Program-made: the position numbers and the translations under genes | Origin: Podarcis erhardii | Taxonomy: Eukaryota | Direction: 5' to 3' (one strand) | DNA: 64,000 bases | Assembly: GCA_964252035.1 (NCBI GenBank) | Contig: OZ176204.1 | Shown here: positions 15,688 to 49,816 of the stretch, piece after piece | Layout: each line of letters opens with the position of its first letter | Position numbering within the stretch: the first letter of the stretch is position 1 | Notes under the pieces: model-generated | Database searches by the model: none | Seen by the model: only the letters and a program-made list of their open reading frames with translations | Told to the model about the DNA's origin: nothing

Positions 15688-18464
15688 ATGGTGAGTCTCA
15701 TGGAAAAGTCAATGTATTTTTAAAAACACATTTTCAGAATGGTTTTTATTGGCCAAGAGGCTTATTACTATCTCAGTTTATTAAGCTGATATATGATAGT
15801 CTAAATGTGGCTTGAATTTTAGTGTAAAACCCTTCACCAGTGTAAAAACATAGAGAACTAAGACTCAGTAATCAAAACCCAGAAAAAATGGTTTTATAGA
15901 CTGCCAGCACTAGAAAAATGGACCAAATGATCCATCTGGGTCAAGCCTGAGACTATTAATTTACAACCTGAAATTCCACTTTCACTGGACTCCACCTGAG
16001 TATTTCCTTTTGCTACCTTGCTGCACCTGAGATTAGTAATTTCTAGGCTTTGCTCTGCATTATGTTCTGATAAAAACTTTTTAGAATTTACAAAAAAGAA
16101 TGATGAACCCAAACTTTCCTTAACAGACTCAGAGTTCAAGATATGGCAGTTCTCCTGTGCACGATGAAAGTGTAAGTTGAAAGAAAAAGACAGTACAAAC
16201 TCCACAGAGGTGACTTGGTGGTGGTATAACAACATGCAAAGCTAAAGTTGGCTTGAAAGGAAGACAGTTTCTTTGATGCCTCACTTTCAGTCATTGAATT
16301 ATCCTGTGTTTGTCCGTAAGGTTGAATAAGAGATTGTTGGACAAGTCCTGAATATGTTTGATTTCTACGTCATGACACATTATTGGAATTTAGCACTTTT
16401 ATTTCATGGCAGATTCACATGACCCAGCTGGCAAAAGATGATCTGGAATAGCATTGTGATTTCTGCATCGCTAGATGTACCAAGCCACTATGTAACCATG
16501 GAGACCGGATTGAACAATGGCATAGTTGATATGGGGTTAGATCCAAAAAAGCTCTTCCATATATGAAGTCATCTTCAGTTCAGGGAAGGAATGTTTAATG
16601 CTAGAGCAAGCCTGTACAACTTATGACCCACCAAGCTAAAACACAGCCAGTAAGGCATGATTTGTGACCTACTAGATACTTGCACTCCCTTCTTTTGCAA
16701 TACCAGGCAGGTAGGGAACCAAAAGGTTTGTTGAGCCCCTCTTGGCTGGTAGACTGCATTCAGGCTGGTAGGTCACAAATTGTGCAGGCCTAAGTTAGAG
16801 CGCTGCATACAAAAAATGAAGCTAAACCCACATATGTTCGTCTGCTTGGCAAAAGGCTGTAGCTTCTCCTAAGCAATAAAGAATGAGAACTGCTACCAAG
16901 CAGATCCACCTCTAACAGGATTTTCAAAACTCTTGTGTTTGTGGTACAGAGCTTGTTGCTATTTTTCTTCTTGTCACAGTGCTTTTGGGTGCATCCTTTG
17001 GACTCTCTCTCTGTGTGTGTGTGTGTGATGCAGCAAGTATATAACAACTTATATAACAACCACAATCCCAGACCATCCAAGATATGCTCAAGAACCCATG
17101 TGGTACAATGGCTGAAGTGTTGGGCTTCAATGTGGATTATAATCCCTGTTCAGCTATGGAGAGTGTTATTAGTTATTATTGCTTAGCCTAGCATACATCA
17201 TAAAAGGTGGCAACTGTGAGGTTAAAACTGGTTGTTTGAATAATGATGGGATGCAAGCATACTACATATACTGATCCTACATCCTGGGCCTGAAAGGACA
17301 TGATTCAGCTTGTGGCAATGCACCTTACAGAAGTTTGCTTCAACATGATAAGAGATCTTCAAAGAGCAGATATCAGAGAAAGGATGGATAATTTTTCTAC
17401 TTCTTTACGTTAGACAAAATTCTGTTCTTTCTGCATAACAAGTATGGGGAACCTTTGGCTCTCTACATGTTACTAAACTACAACCTCCATCATCACATCA
17501 GCTTGCTAGGGCTGATGTCACTTGTAGTTCAGCAACATTTGGAAAGCCAAAGGTTCCCACTTCTGCTGTAATAAAACCCCCCGAGTTTTATCTGGACAAG
17601 GTTTACCACATGCAGCCAACCTGCCTTCAGTGCCAAGGATCATAAAATAAAAATAAAAATGGCACCTCCCTGTAAAAGTCATCTGGAAACTTGAATGCTT
17701 GGTGTCATTCAAACCCCTGAGCCAATGAGATACTTAATACAGGGATCACCATTGTGAAAGCTTTCTGTCCAACTATGGTAGCTGTCAAATTAATCACACT
17801 TGTGATTGCCAGCTTTGCAGGTAGTGTTACCAGAGGAATCATTTGTTATAGGTTGCTCTTGTAGAATATTTGATTAAATTAAGCATATGTGGAGGCTGCT
17901 TGAAACTCAAGCAGTTTCCTAAATCTGGATATGAGTAGGCAGTGCCATAGAAGAATCTTTAGGAGTTTCCAATCAACTTTTTCATATTGTCACCTTGATA
18001 ACGGAACAGTTTGGGGTCAGGTTACCTGAAAGACCACCTGACCCGCAATGAACCTGTAAGATCATATAGATCAGCACTCTACAGGATACCAGAGTGGGTA
18101 AATTGAAAACAGGCATTTTCTGCTGTTTCCCCTGCACATTGACGTGCCCGTCTCTTTGCCCTACATGAAGCATCACAGCAATTTCCCTTGATTGTCTTGT
18201 TAAAGGCATACCTTTTTCGGCAAGCTTCCCCTAATCTATCGACTCAGGCCCTGTACCACTGGATTTCTGTTTTTATGATGTAGTTTTATTGTTTTTACAC
18301 TGATTTGCATTGTTTGTACACAACATTGAGGGTTTCTTTGAATATTAAGTGGTTCAGAAATATTTTTAAATAAATAACACACCTGAAATGACAACTACTA
18401 ATGGATTTGTGACACATTGGGAGTAATCCTCTATCTATAATTTCCTTTCTTCCATGTCTTGCAG

Positions 18465-18500
18465 TCTCCAAGGACACTCTCTCCAACTCCATCTGCAGAA
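18465..18500 (+). CDS. ABLIM1: ABLIM1 exon, 36 nt (SPRTLSPTPSAE)
   Basis: ttgcAG / GTaagt, phase 0-0; identical to recalled ABLIM1 peptide. Confidence 0.96.
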
Positions 18501-36408: not shown

Positions 36409-36555
36409 ATGCAGCTGCCCTGGCAGCCCAGAACAAGTCTTCCGATGATATCATCAAGTCCTCCAAGTTCCCAGCAGCTCACGCTCCAGCACCCAACGAG
36501 ATTCCAAAGATTGAGACAGAATACTGGCCAGGCCCACCCGCACTTGCGGCTGTAG
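36409..36555 (+). CDS. ABLIM1: ABLIM1 exon (DAAALAAQNKSSDDIIKSSKFPAAHAPAPNEIPKIETEYWPGPPALAAV)
   Basis: atctAG / GTatgg, 147 nt, phase 1-1; SKFPAA..P...PKIE..WP.PP family motif. Confidence 0.96.
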   Translation: MQLPWQPRTSLPMISSSPPSSQQLTLQHPTRFQRLRQNTGQAHPHLRL

Positions 36556-39500
36556 GTATGGAACAACAAGTGACAAAAAGTGTAAACCCCACCCCCAGCT
36601 TTCTACTAACCTATAAATAAATTTAGACTAATATTAATTAGTGTGTGATACAGGGACATTGAACTCATTTGCACCTGATCCTTAAGAGTCTTATGGGTGC
36701 TACACTAAATATATAATGTGAAAAGATGGGGAGAGGGATTTCCCTGGAAAACCCTGTAGTTTGGAATGTATAACCTCAGACTCTGGGATTTCAAATCCCT
36801 GGAGTCTACATTCCATTGAAGTGCAAACTCCCAGGTTTTCCTGTGTTTCTTTCTCATTTGGACCCCTCCCATGCATGCCTAACACAGAACCTCTAAGCTT
36901 TGCTTTAACGTATCTAGAGTTCATAAAGACATTTAGGGTTTATCATAGGAGCTTTATGAAGGGAGATTTTTTCCCGTGTGTACATGCTGTTCCTCCGATT
37001 TCCCCCTTTTAAGAGCTTTTGGCCCCCGAAACCACAATGCACTTTTTGAATTCAGAGAGTTTAAACAGGAAGTTGAGGTTTCTTTGGGACACTTTTTGAG
37101 AAGGAAAGTGAGGATTTGGATATTTCTCCTTAGTTTCTAGTCAAAAATATTATCATTTCTTTATGAATATATTTATATGCTGCTATATCATAAAAATCAA
37201 GTACGGTTTCGACCACAGTATCTATATACAATAAAACTTTGTAAAAACTTAAAATCAGAGACCATCACCTATTATTGAAATGTGTTTTCTTAATTGCCTG
37301 CATAAGCTTGGCAGCATGGAAAAGTTTTCAGCAGGCATTTAAAGGTTAAAACAAAAGCTGCTTGCTGAGGAATGTGTCCAAGGAATTGGTCTACAGGGGC
37401 AGAGTTAAGAGATTACAAATAACATTGTCTTCGTAATCTCATTCAAATCAATGTGTTAAATTGACTGCTGCAATGAAGCCTGACTTGTTTAAGGATTTTC
37501 TTACTTCAACACCTTTTCACTGTATCTAATTAGGATAGGAAACCAAAGATACAGACAGGGTGAGTCATATTATTAGAAAACCTGAGGCAGCCACATTTGG
37601 CAGCAGGTGCTGGGGGACATACTCTGCGATCAGACATACACATTATCCTGAGCTGGTGCCCAGGCATTGGCACCACTGCTGCTGAATTGCAATGTTTGTT
37701 TGACCAGGTAGTGAGCAGGTGCCAGGTGGCACAGTGCATGAGTGAGGCAAGGTGTTTGAGGTCATAGCTGTGGGGCCACATAGCCTGTCCTGCACTTCCT
37801 AAGGTAGCCTCCTGCCCTTAGCTGCAATGGAAGATGTTATCCTGTTGCCAGTGTTGGAGCAAGAGTCAGTTGCCAGTCCTATGGACTTCTGTTCATGGAA
37901 CTGAGTGAAGGGACATGAATCCATCATCTCAGGCTGCAAAATGTCCTTAAAGTTCTTGATTTCAATACATAGCACAAGCAGATTTCCAAATAAATGAAGT
38001 TAAAAGTGGCCTATTAGCATCATATTTGTGCCTTAAGATAGTAATTTTATTTTCCATGCTTTTTTCATTTTTAAAAACACTTTTTTTTTGGTTAAAACCC
38101 AATATGTATCGTCATATTATCTGTCCACATGATTATTTAAATACAATAACTGTTGGTTACCTGTTAACGGTTGGTTGCATACACAAGCCTGATTCTCTTG
38201 TTAGCTGGGGAACTCAGTGTGAGGTGATTTTACAACATCACATCAATGTTACCTTTTTTTGTCAGCATTGTGTGATCATGTCAGCATAAAGAGATTTTTG
38301 CAATGCCAGCTTTATGGAGGGAGGATCTCACAGTGGTGATTTTCCCTTCAAAATTATTCTATGACTGCACCCTAAGTATATTATTAAAATTAATATTAAA
38401 TGACTGGGTAACAAATTCCACATATACTGTGACACAAATGAGGATGAGGGCTTGTTCGCCATGGGTCATAGTAAGCATTAGCTCTGACTATAATAGGGTG
38501 TATGAAGCCAGCATACTCAATATATGAAATGGCCATAGCTAAAATCATCTCATACTGACTTCACCAAATCCAGAAGGCACAGGTGAATTGGACCTACAGC
38601 AGGCATTTGGGGATCTCTAAAGAAAATAATTTATTCTTCTAACATGGAATGTGGTCAGCTTGATAAGAAACAGGAAACAGTTATATTACATTTTGGAAAA
38701 TGTTAGCAACGTCTGCTAAAGGTTCAAAATGCGGAAGGACCCAGGGGCAGCAGAGATTTCATAGGGTGGGTGTGTGTGTGCTTTGAGCAAGGAAAAGTGA
38801 CTTCAGGAGCTGGCTGTTTTCAGCAAGCAGTAGTGGCAGGAGAGAAGAGGGTGCCTAATCTTACTCCTGTGTACCATTTTCCCACTGCAATGCTTCTCCC
38901 TGCAAACTGGGCTCCAGACTCATGCTTGTGAGAAGACAGAAAAAAATATACATCTAGAACAGTGTTTGGGGAAAAGCAGGCTGGGGAGCAGGAACTTGCA
39001 GCAGGAAAATGGCAGGCGGGAGGGGTTATGTACACTCTTGAAGCCGTTTCTGCTTCTTAAAATCATCGTTTGATATTTAAATGCATGTATATGCATGTAA
39101 TATCTAGCTAAGCTCATGGTTCTGTACTCATGGTCATGATACATTAGGTGTGGGGAACCTTTGGGTCTCCAGATGTTACTAAACTACAACTGCCATCAGC
39201 AGCTTGTCCACTGGCCAAGGATGTTGGGAGCAACACCTGGAAAGCCAATGGTTCACCACATCTGCTTTATACACCATTGTCCCCATGTCCATTTTGCTTG
39301 CATATCTTACCCTTCCTATTCACATTTCCAGTGTTTCCCTATTTTAAAAATCCATAATCGTTTGCAGTCTTTGCAAAATAACTGAATTAATATGCTTGGG
39401 TTAATACTTTATTTTAGGTTTTACTTACTGTGGAACCTGAAATGTTATTTATCTTAAATGTAGTTCTTCTGATTGGCAGAGTGCTTTACACAACAGCCTT

Positions 39501-44715: not shown

Positions 44716-44776
44716 CCGGTCTCTACAGACTTTGGTCAGTACAACAGCTATGGGGATGTGAGCAGCGCTGCTCGAG
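44716..44776 (+). CDS. ABLIM1: ABLIM1 exon (PVSTDFGQYNSYGDVSSAAR)
   Basis: ttctAG / GTaaca, 61 nt, phase 0-1. Confidence 0.96.
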
Positions 44777-45059: not shown

Positions 45060-45183
45060 CAGTATTTCCCAAACTTGGGTCTCCAGCTATTTTTTCAACT
45101 ACAGTTCTCATCATCCCTGACCTGCTAACTGGGGGTGATGGGAGTTATAGTCCAAAAAAGCTGGAGACCCAGGTTTGGGAAAC
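45060..45183. mobile_element. hAT-type fold-back MITE
   Basis: TTTCCCAAACTTGGGTCTCCAGCT / AGCTGGAGACCCAGGTTTGGGAAA arms; 8-bp TSD ATTTAGTT at 45052-45059 and 45184-45191. Confidence 0.8.
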
Positions 45184-45295
45184 ATTTAGTTGATTCCTGC
45201 AAGTTAGGAGCTCGGGGATTAAATGAAACACGTATTGTTTGGCATCCTGATCCTGATGCTGTTTCTCTCCCCACCCCATCCCCATCACTTTTCAG

Positions 45296-45303
45296 ATTTT
45301 CAG
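45296..45303 (+). CDS. ABLIM1: ABLIM1 8-nt microexon ATTTTCAG (D-F-Q)
   Basis: ttttcAG|ATTTTCAG|GTacag after a C/T tract; bridges the phase 1 to phase 0 mismatch between flanking exons and gives DFQ, matching recalled mammalian DYQ. Confidence 0.85.
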
Positions 45304-46469
45304 GTACAGTACAGATTTTCTTCCATCAAGTAACCAAGTATCTAACCAACTTCATCGACAATTCATCCACTATGTGACTCAAGTCTGAATTTCCGCTACA
45401 GGGAAGAGTTTATTAGCACATGTTTATCTGCATGTTTCATTTCTAACCAATGATGTAAACTTATATCACTGTGGAAAAGGGCACAGCTAACACAATAACT
45501 TGCATAGGCCAGTTTTGTGACTTGCTTGGTAAGCTTTTGGAAGACTGACCTGAAAGCCACCTGTGGCAGTTGTTTCTCCATCAGGTTTCTCCTGATCTCT
45601 CTGGTTCCAAACAAGGGAGGTCCAGACAATAACTCTCCTCTTTCTGAAGCCATACCATCTTCCTATTTTCCACATATGATTCCCTGACCTTTCCTCCTTT
45701 GTATGTGGTTGTGGACATGGAAGAAATAGCCAGCAAATGACCTCATATAACACTGACATGATCCATTGATTGACCAATAAAAAGGGTTGTTGTTTCTTCT
45801 AAACGCCAGCCCTAACTCTAAATTCTATGTAAAATTCTTATGAAGAGATGATCTGGACAGAATCTTTATTGCATATTATGCTATTAATGTGGAAAGTCTT
45901 TTCCAGCCTGGGATAGGTAGGAACTTGCCATTTTACTGGGCAGATTTTTTTACAACAGGGCAAAAACTTCAGAGTAAAGTATAGCTGGAAAAGTAACATA
46001 GAAGATGACAAGTCAGTTCTGTGAGACAATATTGCCCGTCATTCCTCTTCCTCCCCTACAAACTGATTTATTAATACCAGATACTGGGGGGAAATGCTGT
46101 TGCCTGCTAGCCCTGTTTATAAGCTTCCCAGAGGCATCTAGCCAGCCACTCTTGGAAACGGAATGCTGGATCTGATGGATCTTTGGTCTGATCCAGTAAG
46201 GTCAATTCTTTGGTCCTTAGAACCAGAAAGATACTCTTAACTTGCTGCTTAATCTTTACTACTAGGAATGCTTTTGTTGGACACCATAGAAACCAGATTG
46301 TTAACTTGCTTAAGGAGTACGTAATCATAGTATTCCATTGGCTGATGTAAAGATCTAACATGGGATCATAGTATAAATTCATGTCCATGTTCACCTTGAA
46401 TGCCTTTACCCTTTCTATGTGTGTGTGCATGTAACCTGTGTGTCTGATGTTTACCTATATCTGATACAG

Positions 46470-46544
46470 TCCCTCCCAGATGGTCATGTCCCCGGAATGC
46501 GAATGGACCGAGGAGTGTCTATGCCTAACATGTTGGAACCAAAG
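46470..46544 (+). CDS. ABLIM1: ABLIM1 exon (SLPDGHVPGMRMDRGVSMPNMLEPK), GC donor
   Basis: atacAG / AAG|GCaagt, 75 nt, phase 0-0; MDRGVSMPNMLEPK motif. Confidence 0.95.
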
Positions 46545-48790
46545 GCAAGTGCAGACATTATTCACTTTCCTTCAAGACAGTGCTGGTTTGCCTATGAAAT
46601 GGTGGTAGTTTGTGCTTGTAGCCCTGTGGTCTGTCCCCCCCCCCCAAAAAATGTTGCTCCTTATGTGCCAGCCCTATCTTGCTTTGGACTGTAGGACATA
46701 TGTCATTAATGTATACAGGGCAAGAGCAGCTAATATTCCCTGGGGAATAGACAGCAGCATTCAGTAAAACTTGAAACTGGTAAGCTTTCAGCACCAAGCT
46801 TCTGACAGCCACAGTTATAAGAACCCACAGGGCACAGTCTGTAACTGAGCAGTGGTACCTGCTAACACCCCTTTCAGCAAGGAGCCACATCTTTACCTAC
46901 CCCACCTCCAGTCCTTTTTTTCAAGAAAAATAGGTGCTGGAACTCACCATTAAGTTGTTACAGTAAGTGACTCAAGGCAGCCCTAAACAGATGCCTGCTT
47001 GAAAGAAACCATGTTCACTGCCTGCAGAGATGCTAAAAAAAACTGACGGCAAACTGTCTCCCTAGCTAGTTTGGGGGTTTCCCCTTGTTCTGGTGCAGGT
47101 CAAATAAATGCACCTCCACTTCCCTCGTTCTCTTCTATTCAGGCCCTCGCACAATTGCACATAGGTGCAATGGTAGAGACCTGGCAGCAAAGCTTAAAGC
47201 CTGCTGCCACTACACAATGGGTTGATTGAAGAAAAGGAACTATGAATTGGCCCCACCCCATAGCCTGTCCAGTCACAGCTAGGAGCGACTAGGAGCTAGG
47301 TGGAGTCATGGATCTTAAGAAAAAGTGTAGACTCACACATGTTGGACAGCTTCCATTTTGACTTGAAATGTTCATTTTGGGCTTCTCAGAAGTATGTAAA
47401 GGCAAGAGGTGAGTGGGGAGATCTGCGTTCTGGCACACTCCTGCTGAAAAAAAGCACTGCGCACCACTGATGTCACGTGTGACATCAGGTTAGGGCAGGT
47501 GGAAAGCCTTGCAGCAGGACCTCCTGCTGAACCTGATTAGGCCCACAGGTCATAAATTCCTCACTACTGTCATAATAGTTGATCTTTAAAACAATGGGGC
47601 TGTATCTAATGAACTTGTCCCACCAGCACAAGAATGTATGCTTGTGCAACATAACTTTCCACCTCTCCTTGCCTGGTGCTCCCTAAATCTCTTCTAGGGG
47701 ATTCCTCAACTCTCCAAAGCAGATTTGGGGAGGCCATGTATGGGAAGTTTATGGGAGATGGGAGGTTTAGCATAAATCCTTGTACTGACGAGATGCGTTA
47801 GCTTGATGCCAACCATGAAAGCAACCAACCTGAGAATTCTGCCCAATTTTGGACTCAAAATATTTTTAAAAGCACTTAAGAGCACTACTCTGTGGTTTTG
47901 TAAAATATAAGAATATAATTAATGACTTCAAAGTTCTCAGCAAAGTTTGTAGAATTTTGTCTAATTTTGTTACAATAATGTATGTTAGTTTTATGTTGCA
48001 TTGTATAGCATTAAAATATGTATCTAAAGTTATATAGTAAAGCGAATTGTATAATTGTCATATTCCACTACCAATTCTCTTCCAAGCTGTATATAAAGTA
48101 CACATCATTTAAATAATTACAATAAACTAAGTGGTATATGTTTGATGACTTTATCTTCTTTATTGTACTTCTGAAATCTTCATTAGGTGTTGCAGCTGAT
48201 AAAACAACTAGCGGTCTCAATTAGGTCCCACCATTTCATTGACAGTTTAAAAAAATTGACAAAAGTCTCTTACTACCTTCAAGGAGAGAAAAATTGGGCC
48301 CTGATCATTGGCATATTCAGCCAGTAGCTCAGATAAAGAACTCTTGTTTAGATATCCTGATAGAGCTAGAAAGGACTAGAAGTTTCATTTCCTCCTACTG
48401 GTACACCATATTCCGCATTATGGAAAACCTGATTGACGTTTGCTCCGTTTCAGCAGTAAAGAGTAGGTTTTCCTAGGGGAAAGCACTGGAACAAGCAGAA
48501 GTGTGGACAAAACAATCCATTTCTTATGCTGTGGTGACTGGTGTCCATTGGGGGTTAGTAGGGTAGAAAGGGAGTCAGTGGTAGATAGAGCCAATGACAA
48601 GCAGAGCCAATTCTAGTTTTGTCCCTATACCTGTTTGCCCCACACGTAAAAAACTCAAACTAAGGAGGAGGAAGGTGACAGCCACTGTATTAGTTGTAAG
48701 TAAGAAGGCAGGCAAGTTGGGGCTGACGGGGCAGACTGAGGTTGGTGGGACAGTGATCCATTTAGCAGAATAGACCAGCCTCTACTGCAT

Positions 48791-49506: not shown

Positions 49507-49587
49507 ATATTCCCCTATGAACTGCTCATGGTGTCCAACAGAGGCCGAAGTAAAATTCTACGAGAAGTGGATAGAACCAGGCTGGAG
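49507..49587 (+). CDS. ABLIM1: ABLIM1 exon, villin headpiece N-part (IFPYELLMVSNRGRSKILREVDRTRLE)
   Basis: taacAG / GTaaga, 81 nt, phase 0-0. Confidence 0.98.
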
Positions 49588-49702: not shown

Positions 49703-49816
49703 CGTCACTTAGCACCTGAGGTTTTCCAAGAAATATTCGGCATGACGATACAGGAATTTGATAAATTACCTCTCTGGAGACGCAACGACATGAAGAAGAA
49801 AGCTAAACTCTTCTGA
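49703..49816 (+). CDS. ABLIM1: ABLIM1 terminal coding exon, villin headpiece ([37 protein letters not shown])
   Basis: ccttcAG, TGA at 49814-49816; headpiece signature LP.W+....KK...LF; all 17 exons total 1461 nt = 486 aa + stop. Confidence 0.98.

Follow-up and report, generated by a model that had tools for sequence, protein, structure and literature searches.

Does an exon of only 8 nt decide whether ABLIM1 keeps its C-terminal headpiece and, if it does, is this achieved by skipping the exon or by another route? The question arises from a window of 64 kb (the whole stretch of DNA analysed here), in which such a microexon lies between two longer ABLIM1 coding exons. Binding of ABLIM1 to actin filaments is attributed to its villin headpiece, and removal of this domain changes what the protein can do. 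A search of the literature found nothing specific on either the ABLIM1 microexon or a headpiece-less isoform. The explanation we favour, and consider quite probable, is that the exon is the orthologue of a vertebrate-wide 8-nt ABLIM1 exon recognised as an island, the alternative outcome at this site being that its weak donor is left unused and the transcript is read through.

The 8-nt exon and its conservation

The features under consideration are gathered in Table 1. Read in the sequence, exon A ends in CTCGAG/gtaaca, and it matches ABLIM1 of Podarcis, Zootoca, Hemicordylus, Tiliqua and Anolis at 100% (20/20) by tblastn. At the other extremity, the last coding exon is recognised as a headpiece by Pfam (VHP PF02209, E = 8.6e-18) as well as by the ABLIM2 headpiece of the PDB (2l3x, E = 2.9e-15). 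The microexon sits in the context ttttcAG/ATTTTCAG/GTacag (45289-45309), its acceptor ending at 45295 and its donor starting at 45304, and this arrangement of AG, 8 nt and GT restores the frame between the flanking exons. The microexon would complete the codon split by the preceding intron and add two more (D-F-Q), such that every headpiece-bearing mRNA would need it. This requirement holds whether exon C is present (DFQ/SLPDGH) or skipped (DFQ/IFPYE), since both frames need the 8 nt; the latter form, in which DFQ is spliced in frame straight to exon D, is found in three proteins, from Lerista, Columba guinea and Aix galericulata (P0005, P0163 and P0172). Exons were handled singly rather than as a joined exon A, microexon and exon C, and places 46496-46555 were masked in the local tblastn against the window.

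Table 1. Positions in the window of the ABLIM1 exons, splice-site regions and intronic elements discussed in the text
Feature	Position (strand)	Length or extent	Description
Exon A	44716..44776 (+)	61 nt	PVSTDFGQYNSYGDVSSAAR plus first base G of split codon; donor GAG/GTAACA
Microexon 3' splice-site region	45212..45295 (+)	83-nt AG-free stretch plus acceptor	Acceptor TTTTCAG
ABLIM1 coding microexon	45296..45303 (+)	8 nt	ATTTTCAG; G + ATTTTCAG gives D-F-Q
Donor and read-through tail	45304..45333 (+)	TAA at 45331-45333	GTACAG, tail VQYRFSSIK and TAA; alternative headpiece-less C-terminus
Conserved intronic block	45386..45409 (+)	+83 to +106 from microexon	TGAATTTCCGCTACAGGGAAGAGT; nearly invariant in four sequences
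Invariant block with RBFOX-type UGCAUG	45428..45437 (+)	126 nt downstream of donor	CTGCATGTTT; TGCATG at 45429-45434
Conserved intronic block	45452..45460 (+)		(G/A)ATGTA(A/G)AC; four-way alignment
AATAAA and GU-rich stretch	45776..45781 (+)		Candidate poly(A) signal within the intron, for read-through transcripts
Exon C	46470..46544 (+)	75 nt	In-frame cassette, GC donor; translation SLPDGHVPGMRMDRGVSMPNMLEPK
Exon D	49507..49587 (+)	81 nt	IFPYELLMVSNRGRSKILREVDRTRLE; N-terminal half of headpiece
Last coding exon	49703..49816 (+)		RHLAPEVF...KAKLF and TGA; villin headpiece core

Splice-like geometry alone does not identify the microexon, as 62 AG...GT candidates restore the frame within the 1,693-nt interval from exon A to exon C; homology and cDNA do. 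About 140 orthologous ABLIM1 proteins from RefSeq and UniProt, collected with a last-exon query and two follow-ups (all queries, P0005 and P0268 included, being without exon C), carry DFQ or DYQ at the microexon position, namely DFQ followed by exon C (...R-DFQ-S/T-LPDG...) in 138 proteins from reptiles, birds, turtles, crocodilians and marsupials, and DYQ in three snake isoforms. Elsewhere, the corresponding residues are DFK, ELQ or EFQ in teleosts and DIQ or DYQ in amphibian-like RNA contigs. At the level of RNA, two spliced bird contigs from separate runs (L002 and L003), with a 455-residue ORF on about 1.85 kb, read AGAG/ACTTCCAG/TCCC, i.e. the 8 nt are included in spliced RNA of relatives. 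At the level of the genome, the skink Lerista and the mousebird Colius show gcttttcAG/ATTTCCAG/GTA(C/G)AG at the orthologous place (Lerista L001 61510-61517; Colius L004 42724-42731), both with an acceptor (GCTTTTCAG) identical to that of the window. The earlier note had considered the 8-nt exon obligatory for the headpiece frame, and had suggested comparison with mammalian ABLIM1, where DYQ was anticipated, as well as a check that the bridging residues do not stem from another exon. The proteins with DFQ or DYQ, the bird cDNA and the skink and mousebird genomes bear this out; the sheep protein does have DYQ at the microexon, and the bird contigs L002 and L003 carry the 8 nt themselves.

The 8-nt exon annotated in ABLIM1 of Podarcis, Zootoca, Anolis, Gallus, Chelonia, koala and others in RefSeq has the same length, the same phase and the same DFQ (DYQ in sheep and snakes), is flanked as here by the exons encoding ...YNSYGDVS..R and SLPDGH, and its acceptor and donor agree with those found here in both genomes examined; the exon of the window differs by its letters, ATTTTCAG instead of ATTTCCAG or ACTTCCAG, the difference being synonymous only. 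Judged by this homology, 45296-45303 is a genuine and old ABLIM1 coding exon of 8 nt, which the annotation of many vertebrates already contains. Besides, ABLIM2-like proteins have R-EYK-IYPYD or S-QYK-IYPYD at the same place, an alternation of E and Q as from a split codon before an 8-nt exon, from which we infer that the microexon predates the ABLIM paralogues. The microexon itself is thereby ordinary, conserved and already annotated.

It is nonetheless absent from some gene models. Several Ensembl/UniProt-type models without the 8-nt exon patch the frame (P0219, P0242, P0245, P0247, P0256, P0257, P0259, P0263, P0204, P0266, P0196, P0192 and P0010): in some, R-GK-SLPDGH results from five intronic bases (GTAAG) taken as coding, and in others exon A is trimmed or intron is translated. 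Omission of the microexon is a systematic annotation error in some pipelines. A protein of 113 residues from Platysternon megacephalum (P0004), labelled 'BTB/POZ domain-containing protein 9', consists of the C-terminal exons of ABLIM1 with a start in the intron before exon C. Regarding exon C, its GCAAGT donor (46545-46550) is present in Lerista (L001 63809-63814) and in Colius (L004 44049-44054), indicating a conserved GC-AG intron adjoining an in-frame cassette exon.

Loss of the headpiece at the microexon donor

Headpiece-less ABLIM1 is on record in squamates. As many as 56 isoforms lacking the VHP, from 13 species (Paroedura, Heteronotia, Eublepharis, Euleptes, Sphaerodactylus, Hemicordylus, two Podarcis, Zootoca, Tiliqua, Varanus and two Anolis), contain the microexon and read through its donor, these RefSeq isoforms being computational models; their consensus tail is ...DFQ-VQY(R/G/E)(F/V)S(S/T)(I/F/L/S)K followed by a stop. 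The same read-through in the window gives DFQ-VQYRFSSIK and a stop, with 12/12 identity to the tails of the Podarcis and Hemicordylus isoforms by tblastn. In the genome of Colius, it gives VEYGFSSIN and a stop, a tail of the same length. An in-frame stop is thus found shortly past the unused donor, with its position conserved in the window, the 13 squamates and Colius, and the donor itself is kept suboptimal across species (GTACAG or GTAGAG). A salmonid model (P0380) likewise has EFQ and then continues into the intron. As for RNA, a bird contig (L005) in which at least 10 upstream exons are spliced enters the microexon by a splice junction and then follows the intron collinearly over 213 nt; RNA spliced upstream and unspliced downstream is therefore found in a bird relative. 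When the weak donor is unused, translation would proceed 9 codons into the intron to the position-conserved stop and yield a protein without the villin headpiece. Going by these recorded forms, headpiece-less ABLIM1 arises by donor read-through and not by microexon skipping, and the window species presumably behaves like its relatives in both microexon inclusion and read-through. As the squamate headpiece-less forms arise at the microexon donor, this is a concrete place where ABLIM1 output could be regulated.

With an unused donor, a nearby in-frame stop and the loss of a C-terminal domain, the ABLIM1 read-through resembles retained-intron and composite-terminal-exon isoforms, from which it differs in that no conserved poly(A) signal was found at it. 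In the window, an AATAAA with a GU-rich stretch (45776-45800) lies 473 nt after the microexon and could, solely in this lineage, serve to terminate the read-through transcript; AATAAA is missing at the aligned place in Lerista and no such hexamer is present in this intron of Colius. The read-through RNAs could be splicing intermediates or retained-intron RNAs (NMD substrates) rather than stable mRNAs. That the donor, the 9-codon tail and the island (with its UGCAUG and pairing block) act jointly as a regulated switch dating back at least 280 million years, which through donor use would choose between headpiece-bearing and stable headpiece-less ABLIM1, is a possibility to which we give rather little credence.

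A distinct switch, operated by skipping, had been put forward in the earlier note. Without the 8 nt, the frame shifts to V-PPRWSCPRNANGPRSVYA and a stop (TAA at 46526-46528). Past this stop, 16 nt of exon C remain and, once the 81 nt of exon D are added, the last junction is 97 nt away, more than the 50-55 nt applied for AS-NMD; this frameshift and stop geometry had been given correctly. Regulated skipping would then lead to an mRNA degraded by NMD or to a headpiece-less protein ending in VPPRWSCPRNANGPRSVYA and a stop, namely an on/off control of actin binding, for which the stop is indeed suitably placed. Microexons tend by nature to be skipped and, where their length is not divisible by 3, skipping entails a premature stop and NMD (PMC9929638). 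The conserved UGCAUG, in turn, implies an exon whose inclusion has to be assisted. Against this, none of about 380 proteins and contigs retrieved has exon A spliced to exon C with the frame shifted, an absence of skipped forms that is weak evidence since database proteins under-represent NMD substrates, and the headpiece-less route on record is a different one, i.e. donor read-through. The skip-and-degrade part of the proposal is consequently left unsupported, and we hold such a switch to be unlikely. A protein from O. mykiss (P0374), the only one to end in the shifted frame, carries at the junction six nucleotides of unexplained origin and would seem to be an artefact of gene modelling; in two frame-shifted Logan ORFs (P0370 and P0382), the microexon is, in our reading, retained.

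The same bird contig L005, in which the upstream intron is removed and the downstream intron still present, would also suit an inclusion in two steps, where a longer provisional exon starting at 45296 is joined to exon A and the internal donor at 45304 is chosen later on the part-spliced RNA. Donor-like GTs at 45330 and 45338 could delimit such an exon, and the cryptic microexons controlled by the EJC provide a precedent (PMC6224609). However, the GT at 45338 is missing in Lerista and that at 45330 in both birds, and a single contig cannot show the order of splicing; this scenario strikes us as improbable. The preferred reading remains that of an exon included as such, with read-through when its weak donor fails.

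The repeated acceptor and recursive splicing

A peculiarity of the microexon is that its sequence repeats that of its own acceptor. The unit CAGATTTTC occurs twice (45293-45301 and 45312-45320), a 17-mer pattern allowing up to 2 mismatches has 1 match where 0.08 are expected, and the X-N-X-GT arrangement has its sole case within the 64-kb window at the microexon site. The recurrence of the exon sequence just downstream, as pointed out in the earlier note, is therefore present, except that the shared unit is of 9 nt and not a 10-mer, a T rather than an A preceding the first copy. In this lineage alone is the acceptor copied exactly in the exon, which reads ATTTCCAG in the skink and the mousebird and ACTTCCAG in another bird; these differ from ATTTTCAG by synonymous letters only, which in this lineage results in the exact acceptor repeat, and the latter hinges on TTT versus TTC. 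Similarly, at the place of the downstream CAGATTTTC, the other species compared have CGGATTTTC or CGGGTTTTC. Donor sites prefer an exon ending in CAG. The resemblance of the exon to a pyrimidine-CAG acceptor follows from its Phe-Gln codons, from this donor-preferred CAG end and from the generic character of the acceptor. Hence, we read the self-repeat as a coincidence at a synonymous site, incidental rather than the design of a recursive site, and what looked like a designed oddity dissolves on comparison with two other genomes.

The recursive-type feature seen here by the earlier note would imply that the second AG (45302-45303) serves as acceptor, with a GT donor rebuilt at the junction (GAG/GTACAG), so that the exon is bypassed in two steps as in recursive or zero-length-exon splicing. 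The YYYYCAG/GT at 45297-45305 does belong to only 7 such sites in the 64-kb window, and acceptor-like sequence directly abuts GT as in recursive splice sites and RS-exons (PMC6224609). Recursive sites, however, serve very long introns (PMC6224609), whereas the present interval is a mere 1.7 kb (1,693 nt), which is not a very long host intron to be removed stepwise. The acceptor half can be recognised, but GTACAG makes a weak donor half, departing at +4 to +6 from the consensus (Y)nCAG/GTRAGT; the microexon begins with AT and not GT, hence no recursive donor forms after normal splicing; the upstream AG is the first after the 83-nt AG-free tract and is the one used in every cDNA and protein seen; and no intermediates were seen among the material compared. 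As the feature is moreover not conserved owing to the synonymous TTT/TTC difference, it falls away, and recursive splicing at this site is highly improbable. An exon spliced in the ordinary manner from the first AG, as in the orthologues, is what the comparison favours.

A conserved intronic island around the microexon

How an exon of this size would be recognised is suggested by its surroundings. Between exons A and C, alignment to the bird is confined to two stretches, namely the island around the microexon and the last 75 nt ahead of exon C. Upstream, the acceptor region comprises an 80% pyrimidine tract and two CTGAT branch-point-like motifs at about 45247-45257. Downstream, the four-way alignment (the window lizard, the skink and two birds) gives a conserved block at the donor, GTA(C/G)AGTAC(A/G)G(A/G)TTTTC, and a consensus TGAATTTC(C/T)GCTACAGG(G/A)A over 45386-45404. 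Recognition would probably take place as a small 'exon island', through a mechanism that we infer to combine an extended pyrimidine tract free of AG, the consensus acceptor TTTTCAG, a donor whose pairing with U1 would be limited to -3 to +3 (CAG/GTA), and about 170 nt of conserved downstream intron including the invariant UGCAUG.

A model for such an arrangement is provided by the constitutive 4-bp microexon of MPC1, whose inclusion depends on strong proximal intronic sequence, for which the term 'exon island' was used (PMC9929638). Like that of ABLIM1, the MPC1 microexon is very short, its length is not a multiple of 3 and its loss shifts the frame (PMC9929638). The island of MPC1 was defined experimentally (PMC9929638), whereas that of ABLIM1 is deduced from conservation; in addition, and in contrast to MPC1, ABLIM1 has a weak donor at which read-through is documented as another outcome.

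Regarding the UGCAUG, the suggestion that TGCATG (45429-45434) could enhance inclusion of the microexon gains support from its invariance in lizard, skink and two birds, and a conserved (U)GCAUG within about 300 nt downstream is what is found in RBFOX-enhanced microexons. In the window as a whole, TGCATG is not enriched (64 observed against 59 expected), hence only its conservation counts. On the evidence of the alignment, the RBFOX motif has been kept since birds and squamates diverged, and a role of RBFOX at the microexon would be in line with this. ABLIM1 has been cited as a previously reported RBFOX1 target, the exon not being named (PMC4857170). With its highly conserved flanking introns and a UGCAUG less than 300 nt downstream, the ABLIM1 microexon resembles the neuronal and muscle microexons under RBFOX, SRRM4 or PTBP1, from which it differs by a length that is not a multiple of 3 and by having no UGC beside the acceptor.

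A contribution of RNA structure was also considered. Local folding around the microexon was unremarkable (z = 0.66; z = -0.7 to 0.6). Applied to the alignment, RNAalifold pairs the microexon and its donor (45297-45318) with the 45386-45406 block, with 67 of 68 cells paired and one compensatory change from U-A to C-G, in a bird, this support being counted on the same four sequences that yielded the helix. In the window, the duplex between microexon and intron block (-7.1 kcal/mol) is weak and does not outdo shuffled sequences (p = 0.41); we grant this helix a low probability.

Further upstream, at 120-200 nt from the microexon, a repeat-like stretch (45100-45175, containing gggagttatagtccaaaaaagctggagaccc) has no alignment to skink or bird and is probably a fragment of a lineage-specific interspersed repeat. 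Elsewhere in the window, the exons at 16124-16171, 18453-18500 and 36429-36569 match some squamate ABLIM1 isoforms and not others by local tblastn, and are probably cassette exons of the linker region.
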